From: Thalia democratica
Taxonomy: Eukaryota
DNA length: 64,000 nt
Direction of reading: 5' to 3'
Assembly: GCA_965202585.1 (NCBI GenBank)
Contig: OZ241833.1
Span: 52,886,001 to 52,950,000 of the forward strand
In this document: positions 1 to 44,203 of the stretch, one piece after another
How the letters are laid out: each line of letters starts with the position of its first letter
How positions within the stretch are numbered: the first letter of the stretch is position 1
The notes under the pieces: generated by a model
What the model saw: only the letters and a program-made list of their open reading frames with translations
Databases searched by the model: none
Told to the model about the DNA's origin: nothing
Made by a program: the position numbers and the translations under genes

Positions 1-847
1 TTATACCGGTCATGACCGAATTACTAGTGATTTAACATTTATTAAGAAGTTTATAAGTCAAATAAATGTGTTGAAAGTGGTTGCTGGTAGTTTAAATTCA
101 AACGACATGAAAAAAATAAGAAACACATTATCAAACTCAAATATTAAAGTTAGTTTTGTTGCCTGAATATTATTTTTCCAAATCGTATCATGTTGTATGA
201 CAGTAAAAATAAAAAAATAAAATTTTCAAAAAAAATTGTGTCAAAAGTTTTATAATAATCTTCTGTTGACTCTAATTATAAATTGTAAAAACGAGTCGAT
301 ATTTTTAAAGAAATAATATATAAAAGTTTAAATAAGTTAAAATAGACTTCAAGTTGATTTTATGAGTTTATGTTAATGAGTACAATAAAAAACTTCTATT
401 TTAAACAAACAGGTTGAATACTTGCGACTATGGAAGGTAGAAAAATACGATGAAGAATTTTTTACAAAATTGTTTGATGTCACAAATAAAATCGAAATTA
501 GAAAAATTCGTTTTGAGTTGTATGAATTTCTTACTTACGAAAATAGGAAAAATATTTGTGCAAAACTTTATAGGAAAATCAGAAGCTTAGAAACACAAAA
601 TATAACTTCTAATGAAGTTAGTTGTTTTATTTATTCTTTTATAACTAAACTATTAGTATTTGTTTGCGAACTAAAATAACTTTTACCACAAGCTCACTGC
701 ACTTTTGTTTTAATTTAATCTAAATTACAGATTACAATTGAAGTACAAGCTGAAATACAATATAAATGTGAAATAATACTTGAAGCAAAATTAATAAAAG
801 GACGACCACCAATATTTACTAATCGGTTTGTTTATAATATCTATTAA
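1..847 (+). CDS. 3' end of NLR-like gene 0 (exons <1-148, 413-616, 731-847)
   Basis: Exons homologous to the terminal exons of genes 1 and 2: ..RITSDLTFIKKF..SNIK|gttagt; ag|VEYLRLWKVEKYDEE..ITSNE|gttagt (204 nt); ag|ITIEVQAEIQ..RFVYNIY* (117 nt). Canonical AG/GT sites with consistent phases. Confidence 0.85.
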
Positions 848-849
848 GT

Positions 850-3800
850 TTACTTCTGTTAAACACTTAAATAAATTTTATTAACTAATATTCATATTTA
901 TTTTGTTTTGATTATTTACTAATCAGTTTTTTATATATTAATCAAACTCAACTTATGCATATTAAATCAAAAAAACAACTAGCTTTTAAAAAGCTCTCAT
1001 ATCTTCAAGATTAGATGTAAATATGAAAAATATGTAAAAAATGGGTGTATAAAGAATTTCCTAAACTGCTTGGCAGAATTTCACCTTTTTCAGAAACTGA
1101 AAAATACCACCCCCAAACCGCAGAATATCTATTGTCATTGTCTAAAATATCCATTGTTAGTGTCAAATATGAAATGTATCCCCCTTATTTCATTTTTACT
1201 AGTCACCCCCTCCCCTTTAATTTCTCAAGATATGTAACTTTTATTTTTATTTTAACAAGATGAGTAATGTATTAAATTTAGTGTTTATTAACTAAATGTT
1301 TACTAAAAAACCCAGTAAATTTTATTTCATTGTTTTATTTTTAATCGCTGCAAACAAAAACAATTAACTTCAAAAATTATCATAAATCAAATAAGTTACT
1401 TATTATATCCAAATTAAATAACAAAATAGAAACCTTGTTCACTAAAAACTTGTTCTAATTTTGCAAATTATTTTTTCAATCTAAATATCAATTATTTTTT
1501 GTCACATAATTTAAACAGGAGATATGGTCGCAAATGTGCTATTCAATGAAAACTTTCCAATAACTTCTGAAAACGTTGTAAGAGAATTCGCTGTTTATTT
1601 TAATTTCTTTCAAAACAACATTTTAATTAAGTTATTGAGCTTCATTTATAAAAGATATAACAAACTTTTGTTGTAACTAATATTTCTTTAGAATAGAACG
1701 AAAAAGTTATAAAATTATAATGTTATAAAAAATCTATTAAGTTCGTTCTAGTATCTACATTTCTACTACGTGATGCAACTTATACATAAAAAATAATTAT
1801 TACTTTATATTTATATGAACTAAAACGAAAACTATGACAACTTTGATTGTTGTAAACTTGTATTAACTTTTATACTTTACCTTATTTAGATAATATTACA
1901 ATTTTGTTCTTTTGTCTTACTAAAACTTACATAAATCCGTTTAAACAAAAAAAAAACTAAACACTTTAATATTAGTTTGTTTTTTCACGTGTTTTTATTG
2001 TTTCATATACAGTTTCCTACAGATTTTTAAACTAAAATAAACTGTTATCAACTTTTTGTATGTAGACTTCGCTTTTAGTTCTTTGATTTTGAATTTTTGA
2101 TATTGAAATCAAATGTTTAATTTTAAGCACCTAAACTTCAACTTGTAATAGAAAATCTACAATTTACTTACAGCAAAAAAGAAAGTTAATGCCAAATTAA
2201 ATATTTATTAACTTATTGTTACAATTATTACTGTAGTGTGTCAAAACAAATGAACAACTTTTTTTAATTTTTCTGTACAAGCATATACACTTTTTAAAAA
2301 TACTTTGAAGTCTTGTAAGACTTTTTTGCTCTTCCATTAATATGTAGAATCTTTTATTTTTTAATGAGCTTAAAATAGTTTTTTTCTTAGTTTTTATTTT
2401 AAATTTTGTTATATTTAAAGTTTAATCAAAGATTTAGTTAAAATTATTTTGTATGCTTAGTTTTGATATATATATTTTATTAATTTTAAATGTAAATATC
2501 AACACAAGTATAAACTTTTTTAAACTATTTCAATTTTAAAACGGTATGTACAAAATAAGGATTTACTTAAGTACTATATCTTCTCTAAACAATTAAATTA
2601 TAATAACGACTTAAAGCTTTGTATTGTTACTTTTTTCATTTTAGTTCTTAATAAAATTTAATTTAAAAATTTTTAACATTTGTAGTAACATTTTTCTAGA
2701 AGTTAAAAACTTGCTTTAACAATTAAAAAACATAAATGTTGTTTTGAATAAGTTTTTGGTGAAATGGGTTAATATATCTAAAACTATAGATTTTAACTAC
2801 AATTTTAAGATAATCCTAACTTTTTAAGACAATTGTTAATATAAGTAAGAGAATGGTTGTTTTGAATTCTTAGTACTCAGTTGTTTACTCTAGTCTAGTG
2901 TATACTTTAATTTGTTAAAAAAAACGTTGAATTTTAAAAGTGGGTTTTAGTTTTCATTTTAGGGATTTTATGTTTTATTATAAGCTCTTCTTACATCTTA
3001 ATGTTTTTAAAAGCTCAGCAAAACACCCAGTAATACTTTTTTGTTTTCATCACAGTTTAAATTTATTCACTTTGTTATTTTTAAACTTTCAAAGTGTAAC
3101 TTAAAGTATAATGTTTGAAAATAAAAGATAAATCTTTAAATATAGCTAGAACTATTTAAAATCTAGCTTGTTTAAACACACTATTGTTAAGTTTTGAAGA
3201 GTGAAAAATAACCTAATAAGCTACATAAATAATTAAGCATAAAAAAATTTGAAACCCAACTAAAAAAAATATACTTTCTAATCAAACGCATTCAAAACAA
3301 TACTTAAAGCTTGTATTTAAAATTATAAAAAGTCTATAGTTTCGGAAAAAAAGTTTAAAATACAACTGTAAAATTTCCTTTCAAAAGTTTCAAAGAAAGA
3401 TTAATTTTAAATTAATAAAACTCAAATAATCTGTTATTTTTTGTAGGTAAGTACTAAAATTAAATGTATAGTTTTAAAATAAAAAATTAGGTCATAAAAT
3501 ATTTAAAGAAAATTTCTGTAAGTAACCTAATTTAAAATTATAGTCTAGTTAACATTATAAAATATTTAAACTAACTCTAAATATATCAAAACAAATATTT
3601 CATTTTTAAATCTCATCATTTTTATTTTTAAAACTACTTTTTAAATAGGGGTGTGCAAATTAAATATTTTATTAACGACCCGGTTTCGATGACAAAAAAA
3701 TGCGACCTCTACAGGTAAAATAAAATAGTAAACTGCACATAATAATGTTGATTACTTATAATGTAATTGAAAAATTTATTCATGCGTTAACAATCTAAAC

Positions 3801-6800
3801 AAAAACTAAAATGTTACACATTCGAAAATCCAAGCTTGTCAGAGTATAATAAGGTAAAATTGATGCTATTTTTAAAATAAATTGAAATTAATTACTATAA
3901 TTAGTCAAAAAAAAACTCAATTAAAAGCTTTTCTTTTTAAAGCTTAAAGGTATTTATACCTTGAAATTAATCTAGATGGAATAAAAAGCTATCTAAAATT
4001 AGAACTTTTAAGCAAAACATTAACAAAACTCAAAGTCACTGAAAACTTCTAAATCTAATTTGTATTAAATTAATGTAACAGTCGAAATTTAAACGGATTT
4101 ATGAACTTTCTAAAAAAAATTCTAAAAATTTATCTAAGTTGAATTTAGAACTATCTAAAAATTTTAATTTAAACCAAATGACAACAAAAACTCAATGGAA
4201 TAGTCAAAAAATCTATTTTGTACTAGTATTATAATCTGATTTAAGTTTTGTCTACTTTCCAGTTTATTAATAAAATTTTGTTTCTGTGTCTGCATGATTT
4301 CATTAATTCCGTTCTTTTGTTGATGTAATTTGTACCGGACTCAAGTATAGATAAAGCTTCTTTTAAGCACAATCTGCATGTCATTGTTCCTGGTTTAGAT
4401 TTTTTTCTATTTTAGTATTTTCCAACTTATTTTGTAGCTCTTTTTTTTCTTTTTTTAACTTGTAGGTTAGTTTGAAAGTTCCGTTGCTTATTTGTACTGG
4501 AGGTAATTTTTTTCGTTTGGTTTGCTTTTTATTGTTGTATTATTTGTTGATATACGTTTCTTTAGCTGATTGGCGCTTAGTCCAATGTATGTTTTTGATG
4601 AATTGTCTGTTTTTATTGTTGCCTGTTAAATTACATTACTGCCCTACATTCTCCTCCTTCCAGGGCGCATGTTTGTTTCTTTCTGCAGTTGCCTGATTCA
4701 TCTTTGTTTTCTTTATTGTTGTGTTTTTTTTTATTGTTTCAATGTTCGTCATGCAGCTGTAGCTTAATTTTATATTGTTTTTGTTGAAATATTTTCTAAC
4801 TTACTGTTTTCTCCAAAGTGTTTGTTTATTATTTTACTTATGTTTGTTAGAAACTTTTTACCTATGTTTGTTTTTTACAGATTTGCAATATGGGGGATTG
4901 AACCATTTAATTTTTCTTTTTCTATTTCTGTTTTTGTTTTTGCATTCTTCTGTATAGTTAATTTCATAATTGTATCTGTTTGTTTTTAAAGCATCATTAT
5001 AGTTCTTTTCAACCTACTGAACCATACATTTTACCCACACAGCAAAGACAACAACAAAAAAAGTTACATAAATTCAAAATCAAACCATCCACCAACCATA
5101 CTCAAACAAATCCCAAAAATGGTAGGTCTTTCTAATAATTCAAGTAATAAAAACCTGTTCAACAACATAAATACTTTACTTGAACTTAATGCTTAACTAT
5201 TGCGGGTTCGTACCTTTACGTGGGTTCGTACCTTTTTTAGTTCGTTCTTTGTGCAAACAAAAGAACCCTCATTTAAAAGTGCCCCCTTGTGCAAAAGTGA
5301 TTCGTTCCCTAATTATTTTATTAGTTAAAGATTTCTTTTTATGTAGGGCTGATAGTTCGTTCGTTATTAATATTTTCTTACATGTAAGGTGTTCTTACTA
5401 ATAAATTTTCTAATTATTAAGTTATATTGTTATTATAATGTTTTCATCAGCAGTTTCGAACAAAACTTTTTTATCAAAAATCAAAAGTTCTATTTACAAA
5501 AAATATTAATGAGCTGATAAGGTTAAACGACTGTATATTTTAGTAAAAAAATATTTTTTACATATTGTTCATAATTCGTTTTAATTTATTCTAAATCATA
5601 TAAGTTAGTTCTTTTAATTTCAAAATTACTTTCAATTGCTAAATCGTTTCGTTTATTATTTTTTCTTTTCATTATTTTTCTGTTCAAGCCCTTTTGTGAC
5701 CAAAAAAAAAAATCTTATAATCAATAAATTTTGTAAAAGTTGTGAATAGTAATTATTAGATAAATATTTTAAACATGACATGTTTACTTTAATAATTATT
5801 CAAGTAAAACTGATAAAGATGCTTAAAACATAAAATTACTCAATATTGCTTCAAACATAGCAAAAAACAATCTACAATTTTAAAAAGTTATATTTATTAC
5901 ATTACTTTCTAACAATACTTTTTATCAGCGCTATTACTTTCAAAAAAAAAAGTTTAACTTATTATTAAAAAAGTTAGTTAAATGTAGTAGAATATTTTAA
6001 AATTGGTTAGTAAACCATAAAATTCAAAATAAATTCATAAACCTATTAGATTGTTCACCAAATACAAATAAAAGTTTTGTAAACGATCGCAAATTTGCTT
6101 ATTAAAAGAGTTAAACGATGAAATCAGTCACGCAGAACGAATTCGGTTTCGCAGCAACAGTTTGTTATTGGATTTTTTTTAAAGTAATTAAATAATTTTT
6201 AGCTAGCTTTAGTTTGATGTGTAGTAAAATAACCTTAATCAAATTATTAATATAGTTTTAAACGTATTTATATATTAAACAACAAATTTAATTTAAAATT
6301 TTATTAGCCTTGCCTAAGGGTACAAACTGCAGCCCGCAAAACAAAATTATGCGGCCCACGAGGACTTTGTTAGGTAAAACCATACGTTTTTTAAACAATA
6401 AAAAAAGTTTTTGAGATAAAAACTTTCGTTTTTGATATAAAAACTTTTAATAAAGCGTTTTATAATTACTGCTTAACTTAAGAAACTTAAAGTTGAAAAT
6501 TAATTACAGCAATCACTTTATAACAACTGCGATCCGCAGAAAGCTTTCAAACTATTCATCAGCGAACATTATTCTCTAGAAAATTTTGCCTGCAACTTTT
6601 AAGATTTATCTCTTTCAAGTGCGTATGAAATGAGATTAAAATAGTTTGTTCTGTCAGATCATTTTAGCTAACAACCTCTATTGGTTTTCTCAAAAGTTTC
6701 TATATTATCTCAGTTAAGTCACACAACATTGAATTTTTTTGTACAAACATTTTCGAAATACTTTAGGTAAGTATTTTATTCGTTAAACCATTAAATTTGA

Positions 6801-7210
6801 TAATAAATTTTATAAGCTTTATACTGTAAATTAACATTTATACAAACTTTCTAGCTATCAAGGCTTTACAATTTTCATCTTAAAAAAAAACAATTAAACT
6901 TGAAAAAGTTTGTTAAACTTATTCTAAACTATACTTGTATCATCCTTTTTTTTAATTTATCTTTTTTTTGAAAAGTATTAGTATGAAATACTGATACTAT
7001 TCAAAATCATATTAATACTTTTCAAATAAAAAATACACTAGTCTGCTTAACTCATTTAAAAGAAGAAAAAAATGCTTTATAGCAAAGATAAAATTAAAAG
7101 TAATACTTTCTTTGATTATCTAATGTTCGAAAAGTAACAAAAAAAATGTAATTTTTGTTTATTAATCTTTAATTTTTACATTAAGTGTAGTTCTAAATTT
7201 CTAAACTATT
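850..7210 (+). repeat. Direct segmental duplication, copy A (3' flank of gene 0); copy B at ~27850-34200
   Basis: Collinear near-identical sequence at an offset of ~27 kb (e.g. 1040-1100 vs 28020-28080, 3648 vs 30665, 6118 vs 33128, 7100-7200 vs 34100-34190). Confidence 0.95.
4241..5175 (-). mobile_element. Decayed Penelope-like retroelement fragment (RT C-terminus plus GIY-YIG endonuclease) with an inverted 5' segment
   Basis: Minus strand translates with stops and frameshifts to YNDALK..RKRKIKWFNPPYCKSVK.TNIGKKFL..CRKKQTCALEG..TYIG..ATELSK..CRLCLKEALSIL..NKRTELMKSCRHRNKILL, motifs typical of GIY-YIG Penelope-like elements. 5005-5175 reads on + as FNLLNHTFYP..YINSKSNHPPTILKQIPKM..NLFNN. Confidence 0.85.
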
Positions 7211-7979
7211 TAACTTTGTCTGGTATAACTTTATAGTTAATTAAGTAATAACATTGTTTTTATTCATAAACTTTATTGAAATTTAAAAAAGTTATATTTA
7301 TGACAATACTTTCCAATAGTCTTATTGTTTCAAAAAAATATAAGTTTAACTTATTATTAAAAGAGTTATTTATATTTAGTAGAGTAATCTAAAATAGGTT
7401 AGTAAAACATGCAATTAAAAAAAAAATAACTTTTCTACTAGATTGTTGACTAAATACAAATAAAAGTTTTGTAAACGATCGCAAGTTTGCTTATTGAGTG
7501 AGTTCAACGATGAAATCAGTCACGCAGAACGAATTCGGTTTCGCAGCAACAGTTTGTTATTGTTTTTTTTAAGCAACTAAATAATTGTTAGAATGCTTTA
7601 GTTTGATGTCTAGTAAAATAAGATACACAAAATAATTGTTTTAGTTTTAAGGGTATTTATATATTTAAACAACCGATTTAATGTAAAATTTTATTAGCCT
7701 AGCCCAAGGGTACAAACTGCAGCCCGCGAAACAAAAGAATACGGCCGACGAGGTATTTTTTAGCTAAAACTTTACGTTTTTTAAACAATAAAAAAAAATG
7801 TTTGAGATGTTAGACATTTAGTTATTTGAGAAACTTAAAGTTAAAAATTAATTACAGCAATCACTTTATAACAACTGCTACCCGCAGAAGGCTTTTACAA
7901 CTATTTATCAGCGAACATTATTCTCTAGAAAAATCTTGCCTGCAATTTTAAAGAGTTATCTCTTTCAAGGAGAGCGGGT

Positions 7980-10280: not shown

Positions 10281-11299
10281 GACACCCACCCCTTTCAAGT
10301 GTGTATGAAATAGATTGAATAGTTAGTTCTATCATATATTTTTAGCTGACAACCTTTGTTAGTTTTACCAAAAGTTTCTATATTTTCATAATAATGTCAC
10401 AAAACTTGAATTAGTTTTACAAAACATTTCAATATACATTAGTTAACCATTTTTATTCGTCAAACTATTAATTTTGATAGTAAATTTGATAAGCTTTATA
10501 CTGAAAATAAATCAACATTTATACAAACATTCTAGCTATCAAGGCTTTACAATTCTCATCTTAAATAGAAAAATCAATTAAACTTGAAGAAGTTTGTTAA
10601 ACTTATTCTGAACTACACTGTATCATCCTTATTTTATTAAGTATTAGTATAAAACACTGATACTAATCAAAATCAGTGTTCTATACTAATACTTTTCAAA
10701 TAAAAAATACACTAGTCTGCTTAACTCATTTTAACAAAAACAAAAAAGTTTTATAGCACAGATAAAGTAAAAGTAATACTTTCTTGATTATCTAAAGGTA
10801 AAAAATTAATAAAAAAAAATGTATTTTTTGTTTGTTAAGCCTAAATTTTTACATTAAGTGTAGTTCTAAATCTATTAACTATTTTACTTTGTTTAATGAA
10901 AGTTAATAGTAGTTTAAATTATAAAAAGATCAATTGAATTGTCTAAATCGTTTTAAATGACATGACTATGCATTAAAATGTTTTACGTAATAGTTTAACA
11001 TTTATAAGTTATGATTGGTGTTACAACTATTTCTTAAATTATTTTTCAACAAAAGCTTCAAGATTTTCAAATTAAAAATAATTTAGTCTTACAATAAATT
11101 AAAATTTTGATTAAAAATATAGTTTTTAACAGGATAAAAAATGCAGCAAAGTTTTAAAGATAATTAAAAACTTAATACAGTTTTTAAACGTGGTTAATTT
11201 ATTATGTTTATAGATTTAGTAACTTTTTTTTTAAATCACAACATAAAATAACAAAAAAAAGATATTGTGTAATACAAAGATATAATTTTTGTGAACTTT

Positions 11300-14200
11300 T
11301 TTTTTCTTAAATATCTGCTTATTATTATAAAAATCATCAATATTTTATATAGAAATAAGCTCACAATTTTTTTACTGTTTTTAAAGTACAAAATATATTA
11401 ATCCAGCAATTAATATGTGTATTTGTCGTTGTTTATTTCTAAACTTTTGACAGAATCAATTTTTCTAAGTAAACATCGGCGAAAGTCAATATAGCCAAAG
11501 CCTGGACTTCCGTATGCCGTGAGACAAGCTCAATTATAGCATAAACTTTTGACCGATTATATGATCAGACCATAATCCTTCGGTAAACTGAAACTCGAGT
11601 TTCGTTCTTATTGAAACTCTTCAGTCAGCCGCAACCAAACAACTTGCAGTTTAAAATCTACAAACGGTTTATAATGTTTTACTAACAAATCAATCGAAAT
11701 AACAATCAGTTGTAACGTAATAATTTAAAGTTGTTACGTAATAATGTGATGTTGATTAAAGATTTGAGATCATCACATGGACTGTTGCAGTCTAATGATT
11801 TTTGAATGAAAGCGTAAAAACATATCAGCTTTGCTGGTTATGGCATAATAATTACTAGAAAAATATAAAAAATATTTATAAAAACTTTATCAAAGTTTTT
11901 TTCATACGTTTGATTAAGTAAACGTAGAAAAAAGAATATTATTTAACCAATTATTTTTTTCTGTTTTGTTTTGTTTTAAATGACTGTAAATAAATTATGC
12001 ACTAATATTTGTTAGTTTAGTTTATTTCTAAAGTTTATTAGATTTTTGTATGTATGTAACTTTTTTGTAGTTACAGAATTAGCAGTATTCATTTATTAAA
12101 GAGTTTTTTTTTAAATCTATCTTATAGAGTTTTCACAAAAAGTTATTTTAAATGTTGATATGTAATAAAAAAGTATAAATTCGAGAAAGCTCGTGCGCTG
12201 ATGGTTTTAATGTTTTTATATAACTTATAATTTTTAAAATTATACTTTTTAAGTAGTAGTTATAATTTTAAATAATCTGAAAATAATGTCTGGTTTAATT
12301 TAGAATAACAAAAATCTAAACTTATGACAAGAGCTCGATTTTTTACCTTCAAAATAAATATACAAATAAGTTTTAGCTATTTTACAATAATTCAATACCA
12401 TAATTTTTTTTTTAAACATATTAAACTTACTTATTAAAAGACTGTTTAAAGGTAGGTATGCTTTTTAAAAGCCTTATATGCTTATGGTACCTGTATATAT
12501 ATAATGCTTATAAAATTCACAAAGATATTATTCTATCAAAACGTAATAATGTAACATTTATAAGTTATGATTAGCGTTAAAACTATTTGTTAAGTTGTTT
12601 TTGAACAAAAGCTTCGTGTTTTTCATAGAAAAACTTATATAACTTTATAATAATTTTAAAGTTTCCTTAGATTTTGACTTAAAATTTTTTTTACATATCA
12701 AAAAATGCAGCAACGTTTTAATGACATTTAAAACTTTAATATAGTTTTTAAACATGGTTAACTCATAGTGTTTAGAAACTTAGTAACTTTATTTTAAATT
12801 CACAACAATAAACAGTAAACAATTTTATCGTTTTTGTGGTAATTTTTATGTTTGAAAAAATACCTTCTAATTCTTAAAGTCGTCAATATTAAAAAATAGA
12901 AATTTTATCACAACTATTTTTTGTTTTTACAGTACAAAATACTTAAATTCGGAAATTCATATATCCATTTTTCGTTGTTTATTTTCTAAAGTTTTAAAAA
13001 AATCAATTTAAAATAGAAACCATCGGCGAAAGTCAACAGAGCCAAAGCCTGGACTTCCGTATGCCGTGAGACAAGCTCAAGTTTAACATAAAGGTTTGAT
13101 TATACCGATTATATGATCAGATCATAATCCTTCGGTAAACTGAAACTTGAGTTTCGTTCTTATTGAAACTCATCAGTCAGCCGCAACCAAAAACTTGCAA
13201 TTATCAACCTTCAAACGGTTTATCATGTTTTTACTAATATATTATGTAAAACAGTATTCAGTTGTAACGTAACAATTCAAAGTTGTTACGTAACAATGTG
13301 ATGTTGATTAAATATGTGAGATTGTCACATGGACTGTTGTAATCTAATGATTATTGAATGAAAACGTAAAAACATATCAGCTTTGCTGGTTATGGCATAA
13401 TAATTACTAGTTAAATATAACAAACCTTTATTTAAAATAAATACTATATCAACAATTTATTTGTCTATAAAATTAATAAACGGATACTGTAATTAAGAAT
13501 TTTGTGTTTGAGTTTCTAAAAAATAATTTCAAGGGCGTTATCAAACACTTTCTATACGCTTAGAAAAAAGAAGATAATTTAACCAATTATTTTTTACTGT
13601 GTTGTTTTCTTTAAATGACTGTAAATAAATTATGCGCTAATGTTTCTTAGTTAAGTTAACTTTTAAGTTTATTAGACTACCGTTTGTATGTTATACTTTT
13701 ATAGTCACAAATTTAGCAGCAATCCTTAGTAAAAAAAAATTAAGTTTATCTGTATAAAGTTTTTACAAAAAGTAATTTTTAATCTTTATATTTAATAAAA
13801 GTTTTTAAATTCGAGAAAGTTTGTGCGCTGATGGTTAATTATTTTTTTTTGTTACTTCTAATTTTTTTGTTTAATTTTTTAACTTCTACTTATAATTTTA
13901 AAAATTCCGAAACTATTGTCTGCTAAGTTATAGTATAAAATCAAAGTTTTTGACCAGCGCTCGACATATTACTTTAAAATAAATCAACATAAAAGTTTTA
14001 GCTATTTTAAAACAATTAAATACCATTTTTTATTTATTAGACTTATTGAACTTACTTAAAAAAGATTATTTAAAGGTATGTATGCTTTTTAAAATCCCTT
14101 TAACTTTGTGGTTAATATATATTATTTATGAAATTCACAAAGATACTTTTCTAAGAATAAGTAATAGTGAAGTATTCATAAGTTATGATTGGCATCAATA

Positions 14201-30800: not shown

Positions 30801-33800
30801 TCGTTAACAATCTAAACAAAAACTAGAATGTTACACATTCGAAAATTCAAGCTTGTCAGAGTATAATAAGGTAAAATTGGTCCTATTTTTAAAACAAATT
30901 GAAACTAATTACTATTTAACTTAAAGCTTAATAACAAACTTAAAGCTTATACATTTTTTTAAAGCTTAAAGGTATTTATACCTTGAAATTAATCTAAATA
31001 GAATTAAAAAACTATCTAAAACTATATTTTTAAGCAAAACATTAACAAAACTCAAAGTCACTGAAAACTTCTAAATCTAATTTGTATCAAATTAATGTAA
31101 AAGTCAAAATTTAAACGGATTTAAGAACTATCTAAAAAAAGTTCAAAATATTCATTTAAGTTGAATTAAGAACTATCTAAAAATTTTAATTCAAACCAAA
31201 TGTCAACAAAAACTCAATGGAATAGTCAAAAAATCTATTTTGTACTAGTATTATAATCTGATTTAAGTTTTGTCTACTTTCCAGTTTATTAATATAATTT
31301 TGTTTCTGTGTCTGCATGAGTTCATTAATTCCGTTCTTTTGTTGATGTAATTTGTTCTAGACTCAAGTTTTAATAAAACTTTTTTTAAGCAAAACCAGCA
31401 TGTCATTGTTCCTGGTTTAGATTTTTTCTAAATTAGTATTTTCTAACTAATTTTGTAGCTCTTTTTTTCTTTTTTTAACTTGTAGGTTAGTTTGAAAGTT
31501 CCGTTGCTTATTTGTACTGGAGGTAGTTTTTTTTGTTCGGTGTTCTTTTTATTGTTGTACTGTGTGTTTATATACGTATTTAAGCTGATTGGCAATTAGT
31601 CCAATGTATGTTTTTGACGAATTGTCTGTTTTTATTGTTGCATGGTAAGTTAAATTTTCTGCCCTACATTCTCCTTTTTCCAGGGCGCATGTTTGTTTCT
31701 TTCTGCAGTTGCCTGATTCATCTTTGTTTTCTTTATTGTTGTGGATTTTTTTTGTTCGTCATGCAGCTGTAGCTTAATTTTATATTGTTTTTGTTGAAAT
31801 ATTTTCTAACTTACTGTTTTCTCCTAAGTGTTTGTTTATTATTTTACCTATGTTTGTTAGAAACTTTTTACCTATGTTTGTATTTTACAGATTTGCAATA
31901 TTGGGGATTGAACCATATAATTTTTCTTTTTCTATTTCTTTTTTTGTTTTTGCATTCTTCTGTATAGTTAATTTCATAATTGTATCTGTTTATCTTTAAA
32001 GCATCATTATAGTTCTTTTCAACCTACTGAACCATACATTCTTCCCATACAGCAAAGACAACAACAAAATAAGTTACATAAATTCAAAATCAAACCATCC
32101 ACCAACCATACTTAAACAAATCCCAAAAATGGTAGAGACCAGACTTTCTAATAGTTCAAGTAATAAAAACCTGTTCAACAACATAAATACTTTACTTGCT
32201 TAACTATTGCGGGTTCGTACCTTTACGTGGGTTCGTACCTTTTTAAGTTCCTTCTTTGTGCAAACAAGTGACCCTCATTTAAATGTGCCCCCTCGTGAAA
32301 AAGCGACTCGTTCCCTAATTACCATAGTATTTTATTAGTTAAATATTTCTTCTTATGTAGGGCTGATAGTTCGTTCGTTATTAATTTTTTCTTACGTGTA
32401 AGGTGTTCTTACTAATAAACTTTCTAATTATTAAGTAATATTGTCATTAAAATGTTTTCATCAGCAGTTTCGAACAAAACTTTTTTATCAAAAACCAAAA
32501 GTTCTATTTACAAAAAAATTTAAATGAGCTGATAAGGTTATATGACTGTATATTTTAGTAAAAAAATATTTTTACATATTGTTCATAATTTGTTTTAATT
32601 TATTCTAAATCATATAAGTTATTTCTTTTAATTTCAAAATTACTTTCAATTGCTAAATAGTTTCGGTTATTATTTTTTTTTTATATTTTTCTGTTCAAGT
32701 CCTTTTGTGACCAAAAAAAAATTGCTTATAATCAATAAATTTTGTAAAAGTTGTGAATAGTAATTATTAGATAAATGTTTTAAACATGACATGTTTACTT
32801 TAATAATTATTCAAGTAAAACTAATAAAGAAGCTTAAAACATAAAATTACTCAATATTACTTCAAACATAGCAAAAAACAACCTACAATTTTAAAAAGTT
32901 ATATTTATTACATTACTTTCTAACAATACTTTTTATCAGCGCTATTATTTTCAAAAATAAAAGTTTAACTTATTATTAAAAAAAGTTAGTTAAATGTAGT
33001 AGAATACTTTAAAATAGGTTAGTAAACCATACAATTAAAAATAAATTCATAAACCTATTAGATTGGTCACCGAATACAAAAAAAGTTTTGTAAACGATCG
33101 CAAATTTGCTTATTAAAAGAGTTAAACGATGAAATCAGTCACGCAGAACGAATTCGGTTTTGCAGCAACAGTTTGTTATTGGATTTTTTTTAAAGTAATT
33201 AAAAAATTTTTAGCTAGCTTTAAATCGATGTGTAGTAAAATAAACTTAATCAAATTATTAATATAGTTTTAAACGTATTTATATATTTAAACAACAAATT
33301 TAATGTAAAATTTTATTAGCCCTGTCTAAGGGTTAAAACTGCAGCCCGCAAAACAAAATTATGCGGCCCACGAGGACTTTGTTAGGTAAAACCATACGTT
33401 TTTTAATCAATAAAAAAGGTTTTGAGATAAAAACTTCCAATAAAGCGTTTAATAATTACTACTTAACTTAAGAAACTTAAAGTTAAAAATTAAATAGAGC
33501 AATCACTTTATAACAACTGCGACCCGCAGAAGTCTTTCAAACTATTCATCAGCGAACATTATTCTCTAGAAAATTTTGCCTGCGACTTTTAAGAGTTATG
33601 TCCTTCAAGTGCGTATGAAATGAGATTAAAACAGTTTGTTCTGTCATATCATTTTAGCTAACAACCTCTATTGGTTTTCTCAAAAGTTTCTATATTATCT
33701 CAGTTAAGTCACACAAAATTAATTTTTTTTGTACAAACATTTTATAAATACTTTAGGTAAGTATTTTATTCGTTAAACCATTTAATTTGATAATAAATTT

Positions 33801-34200
33801 GATAAGCTTTATACTGTAAATTTACATTTATACAAACATTCTAGCTATCAAGGCTTTACAATTCTCATCTTAAATAAAAAAAAATCAATTAAACTTGAAG
33901 AAGTTTGTTAAACTTATTCTAAACTACACTGTATCATCCTTTTTTTTAAGTTTTTTTTTGAAAAGTATTAGTATGAAACACTGATACTATTCAAAACCAT
34001 ATTAATACTTTTCAAATAAAAAATACACTAGTCTGCTTAACTCATTTAAAAGAAGAAAAAAATGTTTTATAGCAAAGATAAAATTAAAAGTAATACTTTC
34101 TTTGATTATCTAATGTTCGAAAAGTAACAAAAAAAAATGTATTTTTTGTTTCTTAAACTTTAATCTTTACATTAAGTGTAGTTCTTAATTTCTAAACTTT
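27850..34200 (+). repeat. Direct segmental duplication, copy B (3' flank of gene 1)
   Basis: Collinear with 850-7210, including the Penelope fragment and one 1.4 kb unit. Confidence 0.95.
31263..32191 (-). mobile_element. Duplicated copy of the Penelope-like fragment with inverted 5' segment
   Basis: Same structure as 4241-5175. The + segment reads FNLLNHTFFPYSKDNNKISYINSKSNHPPTILKQIPKMVETRLSNSSSNKNLFNN; junction at ~32014. Confidence 0.85.
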
Positions 34201-35644
34201 TAAATCCCTTAAATCGAAACTAAAGCCCACTTTTAAAATTTAACGTTCTTTTTTAACAAATTAAAATATCCGCTAAAGTGTGTCGCTGAGCACTAAGAAT
34301 TCAAAATAACCAACATCTTACTTGTCTTATATCAACAATTGTCTTAAAATTAACGATTATCTTAAAATTGCAGTAAAAATCTATATTTTAAGATATATTA
34401 ACCCATTTCACCAAAAACTTATTTAAAACAACATTTAAGTATATTAATACTTAAAGCAAGTTTTTTAACTTCTAGAAAAATTAACACTTTTTACTACAAA
34501 TGTTCAGAATTTTTAAAATAAAACTTTATTAAGAACTGAAATGAAAATAGTAAAAATACAAAGTTTCAAGTCGTTATCTTAATTTGATTGTTTAAAGAAC
34601 ATATAGTACTTAAGTAAATCTTTTCAAAATTGACATAGTTTAAAAAAGTCCATACTTGAGTTGATATTTACATTTAAATTTTAAGAATGAAAATTTATCA
34701 AAACTAAGTATGCATAAAACATTCAACTATTTTTGATTAAACTTTAAACAAAATAGAAATAATAACAAAAAAAAGTTTATCATTTTTACAAAACAAAATA
34801 ATTTTCACATTAAAGGAAGAGCATAAAAGTTTTACAAAACTTCAAAGTGTTTTTTAAAAAGTATATATGTATGTATAAAAAAATTAAAAAAGGTAATTCG
34901 ATTATTTTTGACACACTGCAATACTATTTGTTACAATAAGTTATTCAACATTTTATTTAGTATAAACTGTTTTTTTGCTGTAAGTAAATTATAAATTTTC
35001 ATTTACTAGTTGAAAATTAGGTGCTTAAAAATAAACATTTCAAAATCAATGCAATATCAAAAGTACAAAAACAAAGAACTGAAAACGAAATTTTAATATT
35101 AAAAATAAATAAAATTTGCAGAAGACTATGTATGAAGTAACAATTACAAAACAGGCAAAAATGCAAACTAAGTTATAAAGTGTTTCAATTTTTTTATACG
35201 GGTTTATGAAGTTTTAGTATTTTAATCGAACAAAATCGTAATATTGTCTAAATAAAGCAAAGTTTGAAAGTTAATACACCGTTAAAACAATTAAAGTTAT
35301 CATAGTTACTATTTTATGTAATATAAATGAGAAAAATAACTCTACATTTAGAGTTATATAGTTTGTATATATTGTAACACGTATAATAAATTAAAATATT
35401 GAAACTATCTCAAAAGTTTTATTAAGACCTTTAACGTTATAACTTTACAACTTTTTCGCTCTTTAATAAAAAATTAGTTGCAACAAAAATTTGTTATAGT
35501 ATATTATAGATAAAGCTCAATAACTTAACTCGAAAAGAGTTTTAAAAAACATCAAAACAACAGCGAATTCTCTTACAACTTGTTCAGCAGTTATTAAAAA
35601 TTTTTCATTGAATAATACATTTGCGATATTTTGTACTGGCGTTT

Positions 35645-36151
35645 GCTTGTTGATTTATTTGTAGATTTGTTTGTAGATTTTCTTGTTGATTTAATTGTTG
35701 AATTGCTTGTAGATTTGCTTGTTGATTTAATTGTTGAATTGCTTGTAGATTTGCTTGTTGATTTAATTGTTGAATTGCTTGTAGATTTGCTTGTTGATTT
35801 AATTGTTGAATTGCTTGTAGATTTGCTTGTTGATTTAATTGTTGAATTGCTTGTAGATTTGCTTGTTGATTTAATTGTTGAACTGCTTGTAGATTTGCTT
35901 GTTGATTTAATTGTTGAGTTGCTTGTAGATTTGCTTGTTGATTTAATTGTAGATTTGTTTGTAGATTTGCTTGTTGATTTAATTGTTGAATTGCTTGTAG
36001 ATTTGCTTGTTGATTTAATTGTTGAATTGCTTGTAGATTTGCTTGTTGATTTAATTGTTGAATTGCTTGTAGATTTGCTTGTTGATTTAATTGTTGAATT
36101 GCTTGTAGATTTGCTTGTTGATTTAATTGTAGATTTGTTTGTAGATTTGCT
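35645..36151. repeat. 36-bp minisatellite (GCTTGTAGATTTGCTTGTTGATTTAATTGTTGAATT, three 12-bp sub-units), ~14 copies
   Basis: Directly visible, highly homogeneous tandem array. Confidence 0.97.
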
Positions 36152-37362: not shown

Positions 37363-40300
37363 TTAATAAATACTATTAACAAACCGATTAATAAATATTG
37401 GTGGTTGTCCTTTTATTAATTTTGCTTCAAGTATTATTTTCGTTTCACCTTGTATTTCAGCTTGTACTTCAATTGTAATCTGTAATTTAGATTAAATTAA
37501 AACAAAAGTACAGTAAGCTTGTGGTAAAAGTTATTTTAGTTCACAAACAAATACTAATGCTTTAGTTATAAAAGTTTAATAAAATTACTAACATCGTTAG
37601 AAAATATACTTCGTGCAATTTTATCTTCAATTTTTGCACAAATATTTTTCATATCTTCGTAACTAAGCGACAAACCAAACAAATAAATATAAACTTTTCC
37701 AATTTCGAACTTATTTGTGAAATTAAACGAATTTGTGAAAAATTCTTCATCGTATTTTTCTACAAACAACAAATACAACGAGTCAACCTGTTTGTTTAAA
37801 AATAAATCTTTAATGTTTTTGTTTATAATAAACTAATTAGCTATACTTACGTACATTTTTATTTTAAACTAAATTTAAAATATTCTCCCATCAACGAATA
37901 TCTATTCATTTTATAGTTTACAAATTGATTTTCTTATATATAGTAATGTTTGTTTTAAGAACTAACGAAACTATTTTGAATATAGTTAAAAAATATCTTG
38001 TCTATAGTGAAACATAACTTTAAAACGCATGAAAAAGATTATAACTTTCTACAAAACGAACCTCAATATTATAAATAGTTAAGAATTGTGTTATTTTTTT
38101 CATATTGTTTGAACTTAAACCATGAAAAGATATCACCTCCAACCTATTTGTTTGAAGAATATGTTTGTTGAAAAAGTTTAAATGATAGTTTTTCAATGAT
38201 GTTTGTTGTGTAAATTTTAACATAAAATAATACTCAAAAATAAAAAGCTAACGAACCGATTAGTAATCATTGGTGGTTGTCCTTTTATTAATTTTGCTTC
38301 AAGTATGACTTTCGAGCTATATTGTGCATCAGCTTTTACTTCAATTGTAATCTGAAATTAAATAAATTTTAGAACAAAAAGTACAGTACGCTTGTGGTAA
38401 AAGTTGTTTTAGTTCATAAACAAATACTAATAGTTAAGTTGAAAAAGTTTAATAAAACAACTAACTTCATTAGAAATGATATTTTGTGTTTCTAAGTTTC
38501 TCATTTTTTTATAAAGTTTTGCACAAATATTTTTCCTATTTTCGTAAGTAAGAAATTCATACAACTCAAAACAAATTTTTCTAATTTCGATTTTATTTGT
38601 GACATCAAACAAAATTGTAAATAATTCTTCATCGTATTCAAGTGGACGCGACACATTCAACTCTTCAACCTGTTTGTTTATTATAATGTTGTTGTATTCG
38701 TTTATATAAAACTCATAAAATCGACTTGCAGTCTATTTAAGCTTATGTTTATTTTAAAAACATAAATTTTTAATGTTTGAAAATATTCATTCACTTTTAA
38801 AATCTATAAATTAAAGTCAACAGAAGTTTGTTATAAAAACTTTTGACACCAATTTTTCTGTACATTTTTTATTAGCTTTTTTTCACTGTCAAACAACAAA
38901 ATACGATTCGGAAAAATAATATTCAAGCAACAAAACTAACTTTAATATTTGAATTTGATAACGTGTTTCTTATTTCTTTCATGTCGTTTGAACTTAAACC
39001 ATCAGCATTCACTTCCAACATATCTGTTTGACTTACAAATTTGTTGATAAATATTAAATCACTAGTAATTCGGTCATGTTCGGTACGAAAATAAAGCTTG
39101 TGATTTTGAAGACTTTCTTTCAATTGATTTATTATTATCAAATTTTTAATTTCATTGAAATCACTTCTGATTACATATGAATGATTGTTATCTGTACACA
39201 TATAATATTTTATTGATTACGTGATAAACTCGTATTTTGTTTATTCTTAAAAATAGCTGTTAAAAGTTGTAATACTACTAAGAAAGTAAGTATAGTATTA
39301 ATAATTATACATGAAATTTATTAGAAAAAAACTAGTTTCAAACCAAGAAAGTAAGTCTGCTTCAGTAGTAAAAAATTAGTAAATTCTTTTTATTTAAACT
39401 AGTTAGAGAAACTCTGTATATAATATACAAACAAGTTTTAGTCGAATGTTGTAAGATAAAACTTTGTCGATGTACAAATATTAACACTTTAAAAAATTTG
39501 TAGTTGTTTAAAGATGTTTTATCAGTAAACTTTAAATAAAACAGTTTTTAACCGTTATAGAAACTATTTACTAAAATGTTTTGTGTAGAGAATAATTTAT
39601 TATTATTATTATTTATATTAAAGTTTCAATAGCATTTGAAAAATAAATTTAAAAACTTATCGAATTAAACATAAAAACTTTTTGAAAAAACTTTACGAAA
39701 CATATAAACAAAATTCTACAAATTTACTAACTAGTAGTTCTATGACAACCGATGATATGTTCTGTTGATTTTTTAATAAATTTTGATTTCTTTTTTTCTA
39801 ATTGTTTTGTATCTGTTAATAATTTGTATAAGTTTTAAAACCTAAAATATTTTTATTTATACTTTGGTTTCCAAATTGTTTTACTACAACGAAGCTATTC
39901 AAAAAACTTTAAAGTTTTCTGTCTGTTTTAAAACAAATTAACTTGTATTATAAGTTTAAAACTATACTGACTTTATTAAAAAGTTGTTTAACAAATAAAG
40001 TTATTTTTTAAGTAAAATCAAATGTTTATTAGGCTAAAATAAAATTTGATGTTTTTGTTGTTAAATAAAACTAAAAATTAATATACTAATGTAGTAAAAT
40101 ATGCTGTTAATGTAAATTAAAATATTTAGTACAGTATTAAAACTAACCAAATTGCAGAATGTTGGTATTGGATATTGCGAACATTCGAACAACTTGAAAT
40201 GCATCATTTCTTCCTAGTGGTTTGCCATATTCATCAAGCTCGGGAAATATTAGTTTTAAAAATTCATCAAACTGCTCGATGGACAAGTGTAACCATGCAT

Positions 40301-43300
40301 ATCGGCATGTTAAATATTCCTATTGAAAATAGTATACTTTTATTAAGTTAAACGCTATCTATGAACTTGTTTTTTAATCTCCTAGCTGTTATTATTATTA
40401 TTATTTCTTTTATATAGTAATCATATAGTATCAAAAAGTAAAGCGTTAGTAAAATTTATCCGACCTTTTAACCGTTTCTAAAACTTTAGCTAAAAAAGTT
40501 TTAAAAAGTTATACTGTAGTTCTAATGTAAATATTAAACATATTTTTAGTAATTTTTATAAATAAGTAAATACAACTTAATACAAATATTTTGTAAATTG
40601 TTAGTAAATATTTTGAAGGGAGTAAAAATCTGTGTTTATTTTTTAATTTCCATGTATAATAAAATAATAACTACTCTAAATACTATAGAAAAATTTTTAG
40701 ACAATCTATTATTACGTAAGAAAAAACTGGTTAAACTAACTTGTATACTTTGGTGAGCGAAATAGAAAAGGCTTGGTCCTACTAATGCAGAATTAGCTTC
40801 GCCATGCACACCTATCATGAGATCTTGGACCTCATTTGGTGTGATTTGGCATTTTAAAAGATCTTCCTGCGTGATTACAACCGAACGTTCCATAGTCTTA
40901 TTGTAAGCCAGTTTTGAGAGTTTTGTCATTACTACATCTCCGTCTAGCTGGCTGCCCTTATGAGCGCAACACTGTAGACGATTAAGAAGCTCATTAAACA
41001 CACTGGCTGTTGATCCAACTACTTTCCAAAAATCATCACCAACTATTTCGTACAAATGACAAAATAACCTTAAAAACAAAGGGCAAAAAGTTAACTGCTG
41101 GATTTTTGGAGACTTTTCTAGAAGTTTATTTAAAATATTGTCAACATCTTCGGTTTTAATATAAAATCGAAACAGCTTTTTCATATCGTCATTAGATAGA
41201 TCATCAAGATACAAAACATAATTTGGTTGAATACCTTCCTTAAAGTTTAGTATTGAATGAGGTCTTGATGTTAGAATAAGACGTACTTTAGGCAAAATAT
41301 TTCTTGCTAGTATCGAATTCAATAATTCATAAGCTAAGTACTTTTTTTGAAAATTTATTTTTCTAGGAGCTTGACAGTTTTTTAAAGAAAATCTGGCCTG
41401 ATCCAAACCATCAAGAACTATGGTTATTTTGTGTTGGTTATGTAATAACCAATCAAAAGCTACACTCAATTGGTCATCTGTATACTTAACATCACTTGAA
41501 AAATACAATAACCCTAAAGTAAAAATAAGATATTTCAAATCAATCGGTTTTTTAGGGTCAATGAAAGCAAGGGGAATAAAAAACGCATAATTATTGTTTT
41601 CAAATGTTGACAGAACTATTCTTTTACTCAGAGTAGTTTTTCCTGCACCAGCTGGGCCTATTATCAAGATATATGGGTTTGGACTGTTCCGTATTTGCGA
41701 ACTAGTTTCAGTTTCAATTGACTCATAATCACTAGACTCGCCTTCACTAGAATCATAATCACTAGACTCACTTTCAGTTTCATTTGACGATTGGTTTTGA
41801 TTTCTATTAGATCTGTAAGTATGTATTAGTCATAAATTCGCTACACATCTTAAGATTTTAACGTCCAAAAGTTTTTATATAATAATTAATTAAATAATCA
41901 GTTTCGATAAAAACAAACTTTATATAAAAGTAAAACAACACTTTATACCTTTTTAATTTCATAAGTATGAAATTAGTGCTACTATTTAAAATAAGTAAAG
42001 ACTAATAAAATTGCTTTTTTAAACTTAACTTAACTATATTTACTTAAGTAATTTTTTACTATAAAGCTACCGGAAACCCCTAAAAACAGTCTAAGTTTTT
42101 ATGAATTAAATAAAAGTTTATTCAAATTCTAGCAAAACACAATAACAAACCCGACAACATCATCAAATTGAACTTTTTCAGCTCTTCTGTAAGCACTTCT
42201 TTGTTCTTCAAGAACTCGATATGTTCCATCTGCAAAAGCTGTATTCCTTCTGAAGTGATCTTCAGATAACTTGATGATGGGATGCACTATTGGCACATCT
42301 TGACTCATCTGAACAGTGTCAGGTTTCCCCATCGGATCAGAAAGAATACCACAATTCTTCTGTAAAACCTCTTTCATTTGTAGTATTAAACATCCAGCTG
42401 AAAATAGTTAATTTTTTTATGTTATTAGAAAAGCTGTTTTATAAAAAAACAATTCAGTTGTTTGTTGTTTAGTTATTAACTATATTAATGAAATAATTCA
42501 AAAATATTGGTTTAAAGTAGTTATCTCCGGCTATTTTATCAATTTTTGTAAGTTTTTAAGCTAGTTCACAATAAAAGCATCATGATTTTATTTAGTTTTT
42601 ATTAGATTTAATAAAATAATCTATATATTAGTGTCTTATAATATTTTTTTTTGTAAACCGTAAAAATACTTTGAATAGTGTAAAACAAATCAACAACAAG
42701 CAAATTTTATATGTTTTTGACATATACTAGAGTAAATACAAATCCTTTTAATGACCGCAGTACAAGTTTTTGCACTAAGAAATGGTTATTTAAGTATCTA
42801 CACTTGAAAACTGAATAAACCGAATACAATCATCAATCTACTAACGACAATTGAACGAAATCTTTTATGTTATAAGTAAACATAGTATAGGCCTAAGGAC
42901 ATATAGTTTTTGCACACATCCTAAACCTAAATAAACTCAAAGGTTAAGACAAATAGCTGATTTTAGGTTATCATCAAAACAGTTTAACTACATATTTTGA
43001 GCTTTTTAAAAGGTATCCAGACTTAGAGTAAAGCCTTGTCTTAGACGTGAAGTTTTCAATGGTAAAAATTTGCTCATGCGTATAATTTCAACACTCAACA
43101 AAACCTTTCTTTATTTTTGATAATTTGTACTTAAATATATTAAAGTTTAAGTTTATATTTTTATAAGATACTAGTAATAGTAAAACAATTAAAAATAACA
43201 ATTTGTTTTCTTACAATAATTATGCAACACGTCATACATAGTTTTTCACGAATTGTGTTATAACACGAAATTAAATAATTTCAACTTAAAATATTGCAAA

Positions 43301-44203
43301 ATGCAGTTTGTAAAGAAAGTTTGTTTAGACTAAAAGTTTACAATTTGGAACTGAGTCATTTAAAAAGTTTCACAATGTAGTATACAAGTATTTAGTTTTT
43401 ATTTAGTTTCAAAAACTTAAATTAACTAGTAATCAAAAAATATAGAAGTTTATTTATAAAATTAACAACAAATATTTGTTTACCGTAAAGTCCGTCATTC
43501 TTTTTGAAATTTGAAAGATCATAATTAGCTGTTAAATAAAAAATTGTTTTAACCAAAAACTTTTGGAATTATCTTGGTCTATGATTAATTACATAAAAAG
43601 TTATCGTTTTTGATAATACATGCTTAATTTTACACATTGACTGAAATATTTTTAAACAGTTGTGATATTATGTGTTTATCTAATTTTATGTTTTGTTTAA
43701 AAAAAATGGTATTTAACTGTAGTTTAAAAACTCTCTGTAAGTTTAAGAAATAACAGCAATATTAACTCTATACAACTCATATTAACCATATTTGTAATAA
43801 TTGGAACATACTTGGTCGAATAGCATCAGAAATTTCCTTGAAGTTGTTTTCTTCTAATAAAGTCATAAATATTTTGCTCCATCCAGGAATTAGTTTACGA
43901 CAAGCTCCTTTGTATAGAATCAGTTCAGCGATCTCGTAACTTCTTCCTTCATTTTCAAGTCTTTCTATCTCATCCTATGATTTATATAGTTTAATTTGTA
44001 AAGTTAATTGGTAAATTGTGACTAATAAGAAATATACAAACTTGCAATTCATCAACGCAAAAAGATTCCAGAGTTGTAAACATTTCAACACTTTCAATTT
44101 GTTTTAGACTTTCGGACAAAAGGGGGTTGCTGAACAATTTGTAAATGACTACGTCATCATAAAACTCATCAGAAATTGTTGAAATTGTCATTTGGTTTTC
44201 CAT
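37363..44203 (-). CDS. NLR-like gene 2, apparently intact, 13 coding exons, 961 aa (CARD-like, NACHT, X-Y-Z-X-Y modules)
   Basis: Exons 44203-44042, 43974-43812, 43528-43484, 42397-42151, 41812-40741, 40319-40148, 39812-39732, 39191-38941, 38669-38466, 38351-38257, 38143-38062, 37787-37593, 37479-37363 total 2886 nt. No internal stop was found, and all junctions are AG/GT with consistent phase. Confidence 0.88.
40741..41812 (-). CDS. NACHT-domain exon of gene 2
   Basis: GPAGAGKTT, IVLDGLDQAR, LILTSRPHS, FCPLFLRL, YFAHQSIQ; open throughout. Confidence 0.95.

Follow-up and report, generated by a model that had tools for sequence, protein, structure and literature searches.

The window analysed here is a stretch of 64,000 nucleotides (nt) from Thalia democratica (assembly GCA_965202585.1, contig OZ241833.1, positions 52,886,001 to 52,950,000 of the forward strand). 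It is very AT-rich, with a G+C content of 21-34% per 2-kb bin, and self-comparison reveals three paralogous copies of one gene in it, designated gene 0, gene 1 and gene 2. NACHT domains are recognized in two long open reading frames (ORFs), one per strand (PF05729, E=1.1e-18, 68 bits versus a cutoff of 26.7), and the Walker A P-loop GPAGAGKT is present in both gene 1 and gene 2. The C-termini of the encoded proteins, which probably belong to the NLR receptor family, are assembled from a frame-neutral cassette of three exon types, X, Y and Z, that differs in copy number between the genes and contains codons at which the ratio of nonsynonymous to synonymous change (dN/dS, or omega) exceeds 1. 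An earlier note, made from the sequence alone, had drawn attention to this arrangement. The gene models are as follows.

37363-44203, minus strand: gene 2, 13 exons encoding 961 amino acids (aa) in an uninterrupted frame, modelled from splice sites with a continuous frame, the NACHT match in Pfam and exon-restricted read coverage
44203-44042, 43974-43812, 43528-43484 and 42397-42151, minus strand: gene 2 exons 1-4
41812-40741 (NACHT), 40319-40148, 39812-39732 and 39191-38941 (exon 8, with a Z-like 3' end), minus strand: gene 2 exons 5-8
38466-38669, minus strand: gene 2 X1, 204 nt, phase 0-0
38257-38351, minus strand: gene 2 Y1, 95 nt, phase 0-2
38062-38143, minus strand: gene 2 Z1, 82 nt, phase 2-0
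37593-37787, minus strand: gene 2 X2, 195 nt, phase 0-0
37363-37479, minus strand: gene 2 terminal Y2, read through the retained donor CG/gtttgt (a slash marks the exon border) for 7 more codons and then TAA
19657-27846, plus strand: gene 1, a 13-exon paralogue colinear with gene 2, with one in-frame TAA
19657-19818, 19887-20049, 20401-20445 and 21769-22015, plus strand: gene 1 exons 1-4
22441-23440, 23860-24022, 24355-24447 and 24968-25218, plus strand: gene 1 exons 5-8
25714-25923 (X1), 26030-26121 (Y1), 26339-26420 (Z1), 26636-26839 (X2) and 27715-27846 (Y2), plus strand: gene 1 cassette exons
26178-26290, plus strand: truncated extra Z-like copy in the gene 1 Y1-Z1 intron, with the AG/G acceptor kept and an in-frame TAA, and without a donor
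1-847, plus strand: gene 0 tail, in which exon 8 ends at 148 and is followed by X (413-616) and, as the last exon, Y (731-847), hence a single cassette

The spliced product of gene 2 has exactly the 961 aa that the earlier note had given. A model of this gene with 12 exons and 946 aa was superseded when scanning for conserved micro-exons of phase 1-1 recovered one of 45 nt, kept in genes 2 and 1 (43528-43484 and 20401-20445), as the thirteenth exon. All modelled splice sites of genes 1 and 2 are canonical (25/25). In gene 1, which is otherwise intact and spliceable, the TAA codon at 22787-22789 may indicate a pseudogene of recent origin or an allele of the strain.

The borders of the cassette exons are strongly conserved. 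All five X exons run from cag/GTT to /gttagt, with lengths of 204, 210, 204, 204 and 195 nt and phase 0-0; all five Y exons run from cag/(A or G)T to AAT CG/gtt, with lengths of 92-95 nt and phase 0-2; and both Z exons start at tAG/G, end at GAG/gttcgt and have 82 nt in phase 2-0. The terminal Y exon of each gene does not use its retained donor and continues for 7-12 further codons to a stop. The 3' end of exon 8 shares with Z the sequence RLEV....L.SNDM..I...L...NIK/gt, including the AGG that serves as acceptor in Z. The complete cassette (Z, X, Y) has 381 nt and is frame-neutral, and its introns are homologous between copies. The module lengths and phases, their order (X-Y in gene 0, X-Y-Z-X-Y in genes 1 and 2), the locations of the anchor peptides and the Z-like end of exon 8 thus agree with the earlier note, of which two further statements need qualification: among the residues that it listed as invariant anchors, YDEE, ICAK and ILEAKL.KG are present in all five copies, while KIEI and SN.M..I are present in only four; and exon 2 and the NACHT exon, which it described as nearly unchanged, are 83% and 85% identical in amino acids between genes 1 and 2, well above the 41-66% of X, Y and Z but short of that description. 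The truncated Z-like copy is detected by blastn in two pairings, 25089-25175 with 26184-26270 (81%) and 26178-26265 with 26282-26372 (78%). At 875 nt, the gene 1 X2-Y2 intron (26840-27714) is much longer than its 113-nt counterpart in gene 2; alignment with genes 0 and 2 is confined to the final ~100 nt of the gene 1 intron, so that the sequence comparison points to a likely insertion.

Transcripts, relatives and predicted fold

Four public sequencing runs, labelled X1-X3 and X4 here, contain the locus. Runs X1-X3 are DNA, because introns are covered. Run X4, which is small and of unrecorded kind, has a depth of 0 in all five intron-only bins and of 7-74 in every modelled-exon bin of gene 2, with depths of 7-25 across every X, Y and Z exon bin, including Z1, X2 and Y2, as would be expected of an RNA assembly. 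In one contig of this run, exon 6 is flanked on both sides by foreign sequence, and in another, exon 8 continues into 92 nt located elsewhere. The proposal that transcripts use the cassette exons is supported by this coverage of all modelled exon bins at zero depth in intron-only bins.

The closest database proteins that reach past the NACHT exon, P0010 (459 aa) and P0175 (258 aa), lie on intron-free contigs with a G+C content of 30-31% from JGI samples 3300019144 and 3300018893, which, from their identifiers, we take to be marine metatranscriptomes. Both align with the window exon by exon, so that each exon join between NACHT and Y, by way of exons 6, 7, 8 and X, is confirmed; each carries a single cassette, and P0175 ends 7 residues past Y, like gene 2. 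Five copies with intact splice sites, exon-restricted coverage and spliced metatranscriptome homologues place the cassette pattern far beyond chance. A more distant full-length relative, P0093 (766 aa), likewise a spliced sequence of presumed marine metatranscriptome origin, has the same layout at 24% identity over 737 residues. Other searches returned little: the C-terminal part of P0010, used as a query for homologous proteins, found one relative only, P0175; a related-locus search of metagenome contigs with P0175 gave no confirmed locus; and among 1.84 billion representatives, the family had no full-length gene model whose identity in the NACHT exon surpassed 54-64%. The named neighbors of the NACHT exon are all ascidian (Clavelina, Phallusia, Styela), with ~27-33% identity and E values of 1e-39 to 1e-27.

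Domain assignment is uneven along the protein. Pfam searches with exons 1, 2 and 4 alone, at E up to 10, gave noise only. The N-terminus of P0093 matches CARD_2 with E=0.009 and 16.4 bits (cutoff 28.2) over profile positions 13-90 of 93, and 48 of its 100 atlas neighbors are CARDs, the others being different death folds; the score of these neighbors is low (0.79). The 'CARD-like' character of the N-terminus is, from these matches, plausible but not established. Downstream of NACHT, NOD2_WH scores 21.1 bits, under the cutoff of 23.1. NLRP3 374-841 and NLRP9 307-743 can be aligned with the model of P0010, whose predicted local distance difference test score (pLDDT) is low in the post-NACHT helical part. 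The start of the gene 2 NACHT exon (41809-41715, minus strand) encodes a Ser/Asp/Glu-rich stretch of ~30 residues, which gene 1 does not have, its exon being 72 nt shorter, and a PIVHP motif in the pre-NACHT linker exon (42290-42270, minus strand; 21865-21885) is common to genes 1 and 2 and the distant P0093.

The C-terminus contains no Pfam family, in line with the suggestion of the earlier note that domain annotation might miss the repeat, and its fold was predicted with AlphaFold2 from the relatives P0010 and P0175. The C-terminal region has a pLDDT of 76-91 in P0010, and P0175:75-258 has a mean pLDDT of 84 and a predicted template-modelling score of 0.79. Along this segment the model predicts a pair of helices, then four strand-helix units, a beta-hairpin and one last strand; the strand-helix units have ~26, 27 and 42 residues, the hairpin unit 31, and the predicted strands 6-10. 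In the model, all three exon borders fall at beta-strand starts, such that Z would encode one strand-helix repeat, X two, and Y the beta-hairpin and one strand. A search other than Foldseek against 48,161 PDB chains ranked NLRP3 619-839 first (164 of 184 residues, root-mean-square deviation 3.9) and NLRP9 542-762 second, at Z scores of 8.6 and 8.3, although by the search tool's own warning a Z of ~8 is in the common range; the two matches cover 161-164 of the 184 residues. The next matches were tropomodulin, an F-box leucine-rich repeat (LRR) protein, NLRC4, NLRP1, NLRP2, LegL7, RanGAP and designed LRRs, together with some enolase-type half-barrels.

The tandem repeats of 28-29 residues with LxxLxLxx(N/C)xL, each with a strand and a helix, that characterize ribonuclease-inhibitor-like LRRs were not found: neither an Asn/Cys ladder nor repeats of regular length are present, and the N/C position is variable or missing. 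An LxxLxL-type strand pattern is kept, however, as V-E-x-L-x-L in X and I-D-R-L-E-V in Z, and the statement that the repeat lacks the canonical LxxLxLxxN therefore holds for the Asn ladder but not for the LxxLxL core. We conclude from the models that the C-terminus is predicted to form a short, irregular, sequential parallel beta/alpha solenoid that occupies the position of the LRRs in NLRs and is most LRR-like.

Evidence of selection and exchange among cassette copies

Nei-Gojobori estimates of dN/dS between genes 1 and 2 differ along the gene. For exons 1, 2, 4, 5 (NACHT), 6 and 7 they are 0.43, 0.71, 0.21, 0.34, 0.32 and 0.35, and for exon 8, X1, Y1, Z1, X2 and Y2 they are 1.35, 1.29, 1.22, 1.55, 1.05 and 1.80; the contrast of nonsynonymous and synonymous changes between the gene halves is significant (Fisher p=4e-6). 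Whole-exon dN/dS was set aside as evidence of selection, as it is not by itself significantly above 1 (~1.1). Since a whole-exon omega near 1 could mean neutrality, codon site models were fitted, using a self-written Goldman-Yang implementation with F3x4 frequencies on the five Z-X-Y units (129 codons).

Model M2a was strongly preferred over M1a, with a likelihood-ratio test (LRT) statistic of 55.6 (p=8.5e-13), and assigned 18% of sites to omega ~0, 65% to omega 1 and 17% to omega 12.7. Sites with a posterior above 0.95 lie in the second X strand and within or adjoining the three patches, in X, Y and Z, that the earlier note had named as hypervariable and had suspected of dN/dS above 1. That suspicion withstands the removal of gap-adjacent columns (LRT 45.7), the fitting of each module on its best tree (X 37.7, Y 20.1, Z 6.8) and a parametric bootstrap in which 15 sets simulated under the fitted M1a gave a maximal LRT of 1.34. 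Outside the patches omega is ~1. In the closest pair, gene 0 versus gene 2 unit 1, the proportion of nonsynonymous differences (pN) is 0.48 in the patches, exceeding an intron divergence of 0.24 (p=3e-4), and in the rest of the exons it is 0.06, with a corresponding synonymous proportion (pS) of 0.09. Patch pN is greater than patch pS in all six pairs examined (0.33-0.54 versus 0.08-0.33). The DNA runs have variant letters at 37442, 37448, 38132, 38314 and 38317; these positions belong to patch codons in Y2, Z1 and Y1, and the variants may be alleles or paralogues.

On the predicted model, the selected sites map to x3 and x5 of V-E-x-L-x-L, to two alternate positions of the second X strand, to residues just past the strands and to the turn of the Y hairpin. 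Strands with connecting helices can only run in parallel, which puts their C-terminal ends along a single edge of the sheet, and the selected sites would share one edge and one face, a placement deduced from topology and not from a measured surface. Strand ends and strand-to-helix loops are where the selected residues are predicted to gather, as opposed to the scattered distribution that the earlier note had named as contrary to its reading.

The history of the cassette includes changes in copy number. The best tree of units is ((g0u1,g2u1),g1u1,(g1u2,g2u2)), in which g stands for gene and u for unit; at the level of sequence, it implies that the two-unit state would be older than the split of genes 1 and 2. 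Nested within the unit-1 clade, the single unit of gene 0 pairs with gene 2 unit 1 as its sister, and unit-2-like sequence is seen in the X-Y intron, the Y exon and the 3' flank of gene 0, whose Y differs from gene 2 Y2 at 9/95 positions and from Y1 at 14/95. This combination of a unit-1-nested unit with a unit-2-like intron, Y and flank most likely results from an unequal recombination that removed a Y-Z-X block from gene 0. The one-unit relatives P0010 and P0175 show that one-unit and two-unit states are both viable. Copy number is therefore variable as the earlier note had claimed, with one unit in gene 0, apparently after loss, and two in genes 1 and 2; its view that X or Y+Z alone is the changing unit is not upheld, the actual change being that of a whole cassette. 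The 3' flanks of gene 0 (636-7213) and gene 1 (27621-34203) form a segmental duplication with 90.5% identity. In the DNA runs, ~650-800 contigs match 5.6 kb at at least 90% likeness, and summed exon depth is 10-40 times single-contig depth; these values suggest many paralogues in the genome, although by the tool's own warning the contig numbers are not a copy number.

Repeats and a putative mobile element around the genes

Several features lie outside the genes. Between the 3' ends of genes 1 and 2, a 36-nt tandem repeat occupies 35642-36151 (14.2 copies, 96% matches) and gives rise to a spurious ORF of 199 aa. Next to the start of gene 2, at 44369-47309, two overlapping ORFs of 304 and 277 aa without a Pfam match are bordered by identical 104-nt direct repeats (44369-44472 and 47206-47309); the element looks like a mobile element adjoining the gene 2 start, and a diverged inverted copy of it is found at 56.1-58.4 kb. 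Arrays of 1.5-2 kb repeats with 72-86% identity are present at 11000-19400, upstream of gene 1, and in inverted orientation at 47800-55000, upstream of gene 2.

Interpretation and known systems

The findings are probably best explained by paralogous NLRC-type STAND receptors with a cassette-built, positively selected, LRR-like sensor end. The protein would begin with a death-fold (CARD-like) domain, through which CARD signalling might proceed, and continue by way of a linker into a NACHT ATPase, followed by its winged-helix and helical domains; it would end in a short and highly divergent LRR-like solenoid, most likely the ligand-sensing and autoinhibitory end of a presumed immune receptor. 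The frame-neutral cassette and its homologous introns would permit whole cassettes to be gained or lost by unequal recombination, and modules would also be partly homogenised or exchanged, while positive selection would drive apart the exposed residues within strands and in the loops following them and the anchors of the hydrophobic core would be kept.

A number of observations weigh against this explanation. With respect to the fold, homology to LRRs is not demonstrable by sequence: in Pfam searches at E up to 10, each C-terminal exon and P0010:230-459 gave noise only, hhalign of the cassette alignment with residues 640-1009 of P0031 (Phallusia), which include LRR_6, gave a probability of 0.2%, and the cassette profile had no match among PDB sequences. 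The AlphaFold2 models are of relatives with one cassette unit each, as opposed to the two-unit protein of the window, and the Z scores of the NLRP matches are not exceptional. Foldseek with the isolated domain found no match at E<=0.001 and returned a mixture of ribokinase, TIM-like and F-box/LRR/FBD folds with template-modelling (TM) scores below 0.5, and in the ESM Atlas the TM of 0.60 to nematode F-box-associated DUF8381 proteins is similar to that of radical-SAM half-barrels. With respect to the genes, the only frame break of gene 1 falls in its NACHT exon, and the Y-Z and Z-X joins are supported by the coverage pattern of run X4 only, not by junction reads. With respect to selection, the sample consists of five cassette copies from one locus; patch pS in the closest pair is 0.22, so that synonymous divergence is also somewhat raised over the 0.09 of the rest; and module trees conflict, with Y copies grouping by gene and X and Z by unit. 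Because these trees disagree, conversion or recombination occurs and can inflate site-model tests.

The last two points form the core of an alternative that we regard as unlikely, namely that patch divergence reflects mainly short-tract gene conversion or mosaic exchange together with weak constraint, the high omega being an artefact of imposing one tree on recombinant modules. The mosaic of gene 0, with its unit-1-like exons and unit-2-like flank, the many potential paralogue donors that the matching contigs suggest, and an omega of ~1 outside the patches agree with it as well. Conversion would move both kinds of substitution together, however, yet pN exceeds pS in the patches of each of the six pairs examined; M2a is still preferred in single modules on their own best trees; and patch pN exceeds intron divergence while anchors and splice sites are kept. 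Neutral drift of the C-terminal exons in the pseudogenes of a decaying cluster would account for the TAA of gene 1, for a gene 0 visible as a tail only and for a whole-exon omega of ~1.1, but is very improbable in view of the 961 intact codons of gene 2, the canonical splice sites of both genes, an omega of 0.34 in the NACHT exon, the rejection of M1a, which allows only neutral and constrained sites, and the coverage of exons in the RNA-like run X4.

Two other alternatives concern the nature of the domain. The C-terminus might be neither an LRR homologue nor a pathogen sensor, but a lineage-specific repeat that serves endogenous partners in the style of F-box-associated domains, or self/non-self recognition. 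This is in keeping with the failure of Pfam, hhalign and the PDB profile search to find LRR homology, with the convergence of ESM Atlas embedding (0.90-0.92) and shape (TM 0.60) on nematode DUF8381/FTH/FBA_2 proteins, with Swiss-Prot fold matches to plant F-box/FBD proteins, and with strands of 6-10 residues and a Y hairpin that has no helix. We nevertheless find it improbable, as the domain directly follows the putative NACHT-associated helical domains, in the exact position of the LRRs in NLRs; the best two of 48,161 PDB chains are NLRP3 and NLRP9, matched in the same transition-LRR region; the strands bear an LxxLxL-type pattern with variable x positions; and such F-box-associated domains are themselves degenerate LRR-like solenoids. 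A bolder and likewise unlikely, if slightly less remote, proposal is that the cassette is an independent beta/alpha repeat, not a diverged LRR, that was joined to NACHT in a pelagic lineage, possibly tunicates, and provides a combinatorial germline repertoire. Spread over dozens of genes and diversified by gained and lost cassettes, by exchanged modules and perhaps by varied use of frame-neutral exons, the repeat would then, if the proposal is true, amount to a recognition repertoire for pathogens or for self/non-self.

Under the explanation that we favour, that of NLRC-type receptors with an LRR-like sensor end, NACHT receptors in an AT-rich, poorly annotated marine lineage would carry a sensor-type domain unseen by standard models, and tallies of 'NLRs without LRRs' from genomes of this kind may mislead. 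The locus offers a compact example of three diversification routes, cassette copy number, module exchange and site-specific positive selection, with selected residues that are predicted to lie along a single surface.

The predicted order of death-fold, NACHT, helical domains and C-terminal beta/alpha repeat resembles that of vertebrate NLRP and NLRC proteins. In NLRP3, LRRs are encoded by uniform 171-bp exons, each specifying a pair of LRRs of 28+29 residues and bordered at a constant point of the beta-sheet, and these exon modules can be skipped without a frameshift (Hoss et al., 2019; PMC6642158). The cassette shares with NLRP3 its frame-neutral exons, borders at a constant strand position and the gain or loss of modules without frameshift. 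It differs from NLRP3 in that its 381-nt unit is divided among three unequal exons (~204, 95 and 82 nt) with phases 0-0, 0-2 and 2-0, such that the strand-start borders of NLRP3-type uniform exons are present, but neither their equal length nor, with three phase pairs, their equal phase. It also contains a helix-less hairpin, has no Asn/Cys ladder and is invisible to the LRR models of Pfam, and, in contrast to NLRP3, no exon skipping was seen for it. The named proteins closest to the NACHT exon are ascidian NACHT proteins of Clavelina lepadiformis, Phallusia mammillata and Styela clava ('NLRC5-like/NLRP-like'); some have Pfam-recognizable LRRs (P0031, LRR_6), and they differ in their N-termini (TIR, BIR) and C-termini.

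Positively selected LRR surfaces are a feature of immune receptors such as plant NLRs. As in plant NLR LRRs, a conserved hydrophobic core alternates here with hypervariable x positions of LxxLxL and the loop that follows, and omega is far above 1. In contrast to plant NLRs, the repeat is much shorter (4-8 strand units) and irregular, and the evidence comes from five paralogous cassettes of one locus. The F-box-associated domains of nematodes and plants (DUF8381/FTH/FBA_2, FBD) resemble it most closely in the ESM Atlas by embedding and shape, and plant F-box/FBD proteins, with TM scores of 0.41-0.47, are among its closest Swiss-Prot models, scores that amount to leads only; unlike F-box-associated proteins, however, the genes described here encode no F-box and carry the domain on a NACHT ATPase. 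Exon-modular, positively selected NLR sensors are already well known, so that the general picture is unchanged, and the cassette exemplifies the usual mode of NLR evolution rather than a new principle. What is new is its heterogeneous three-exon construction, without an Asn ladder, and its invisibility to domain models.

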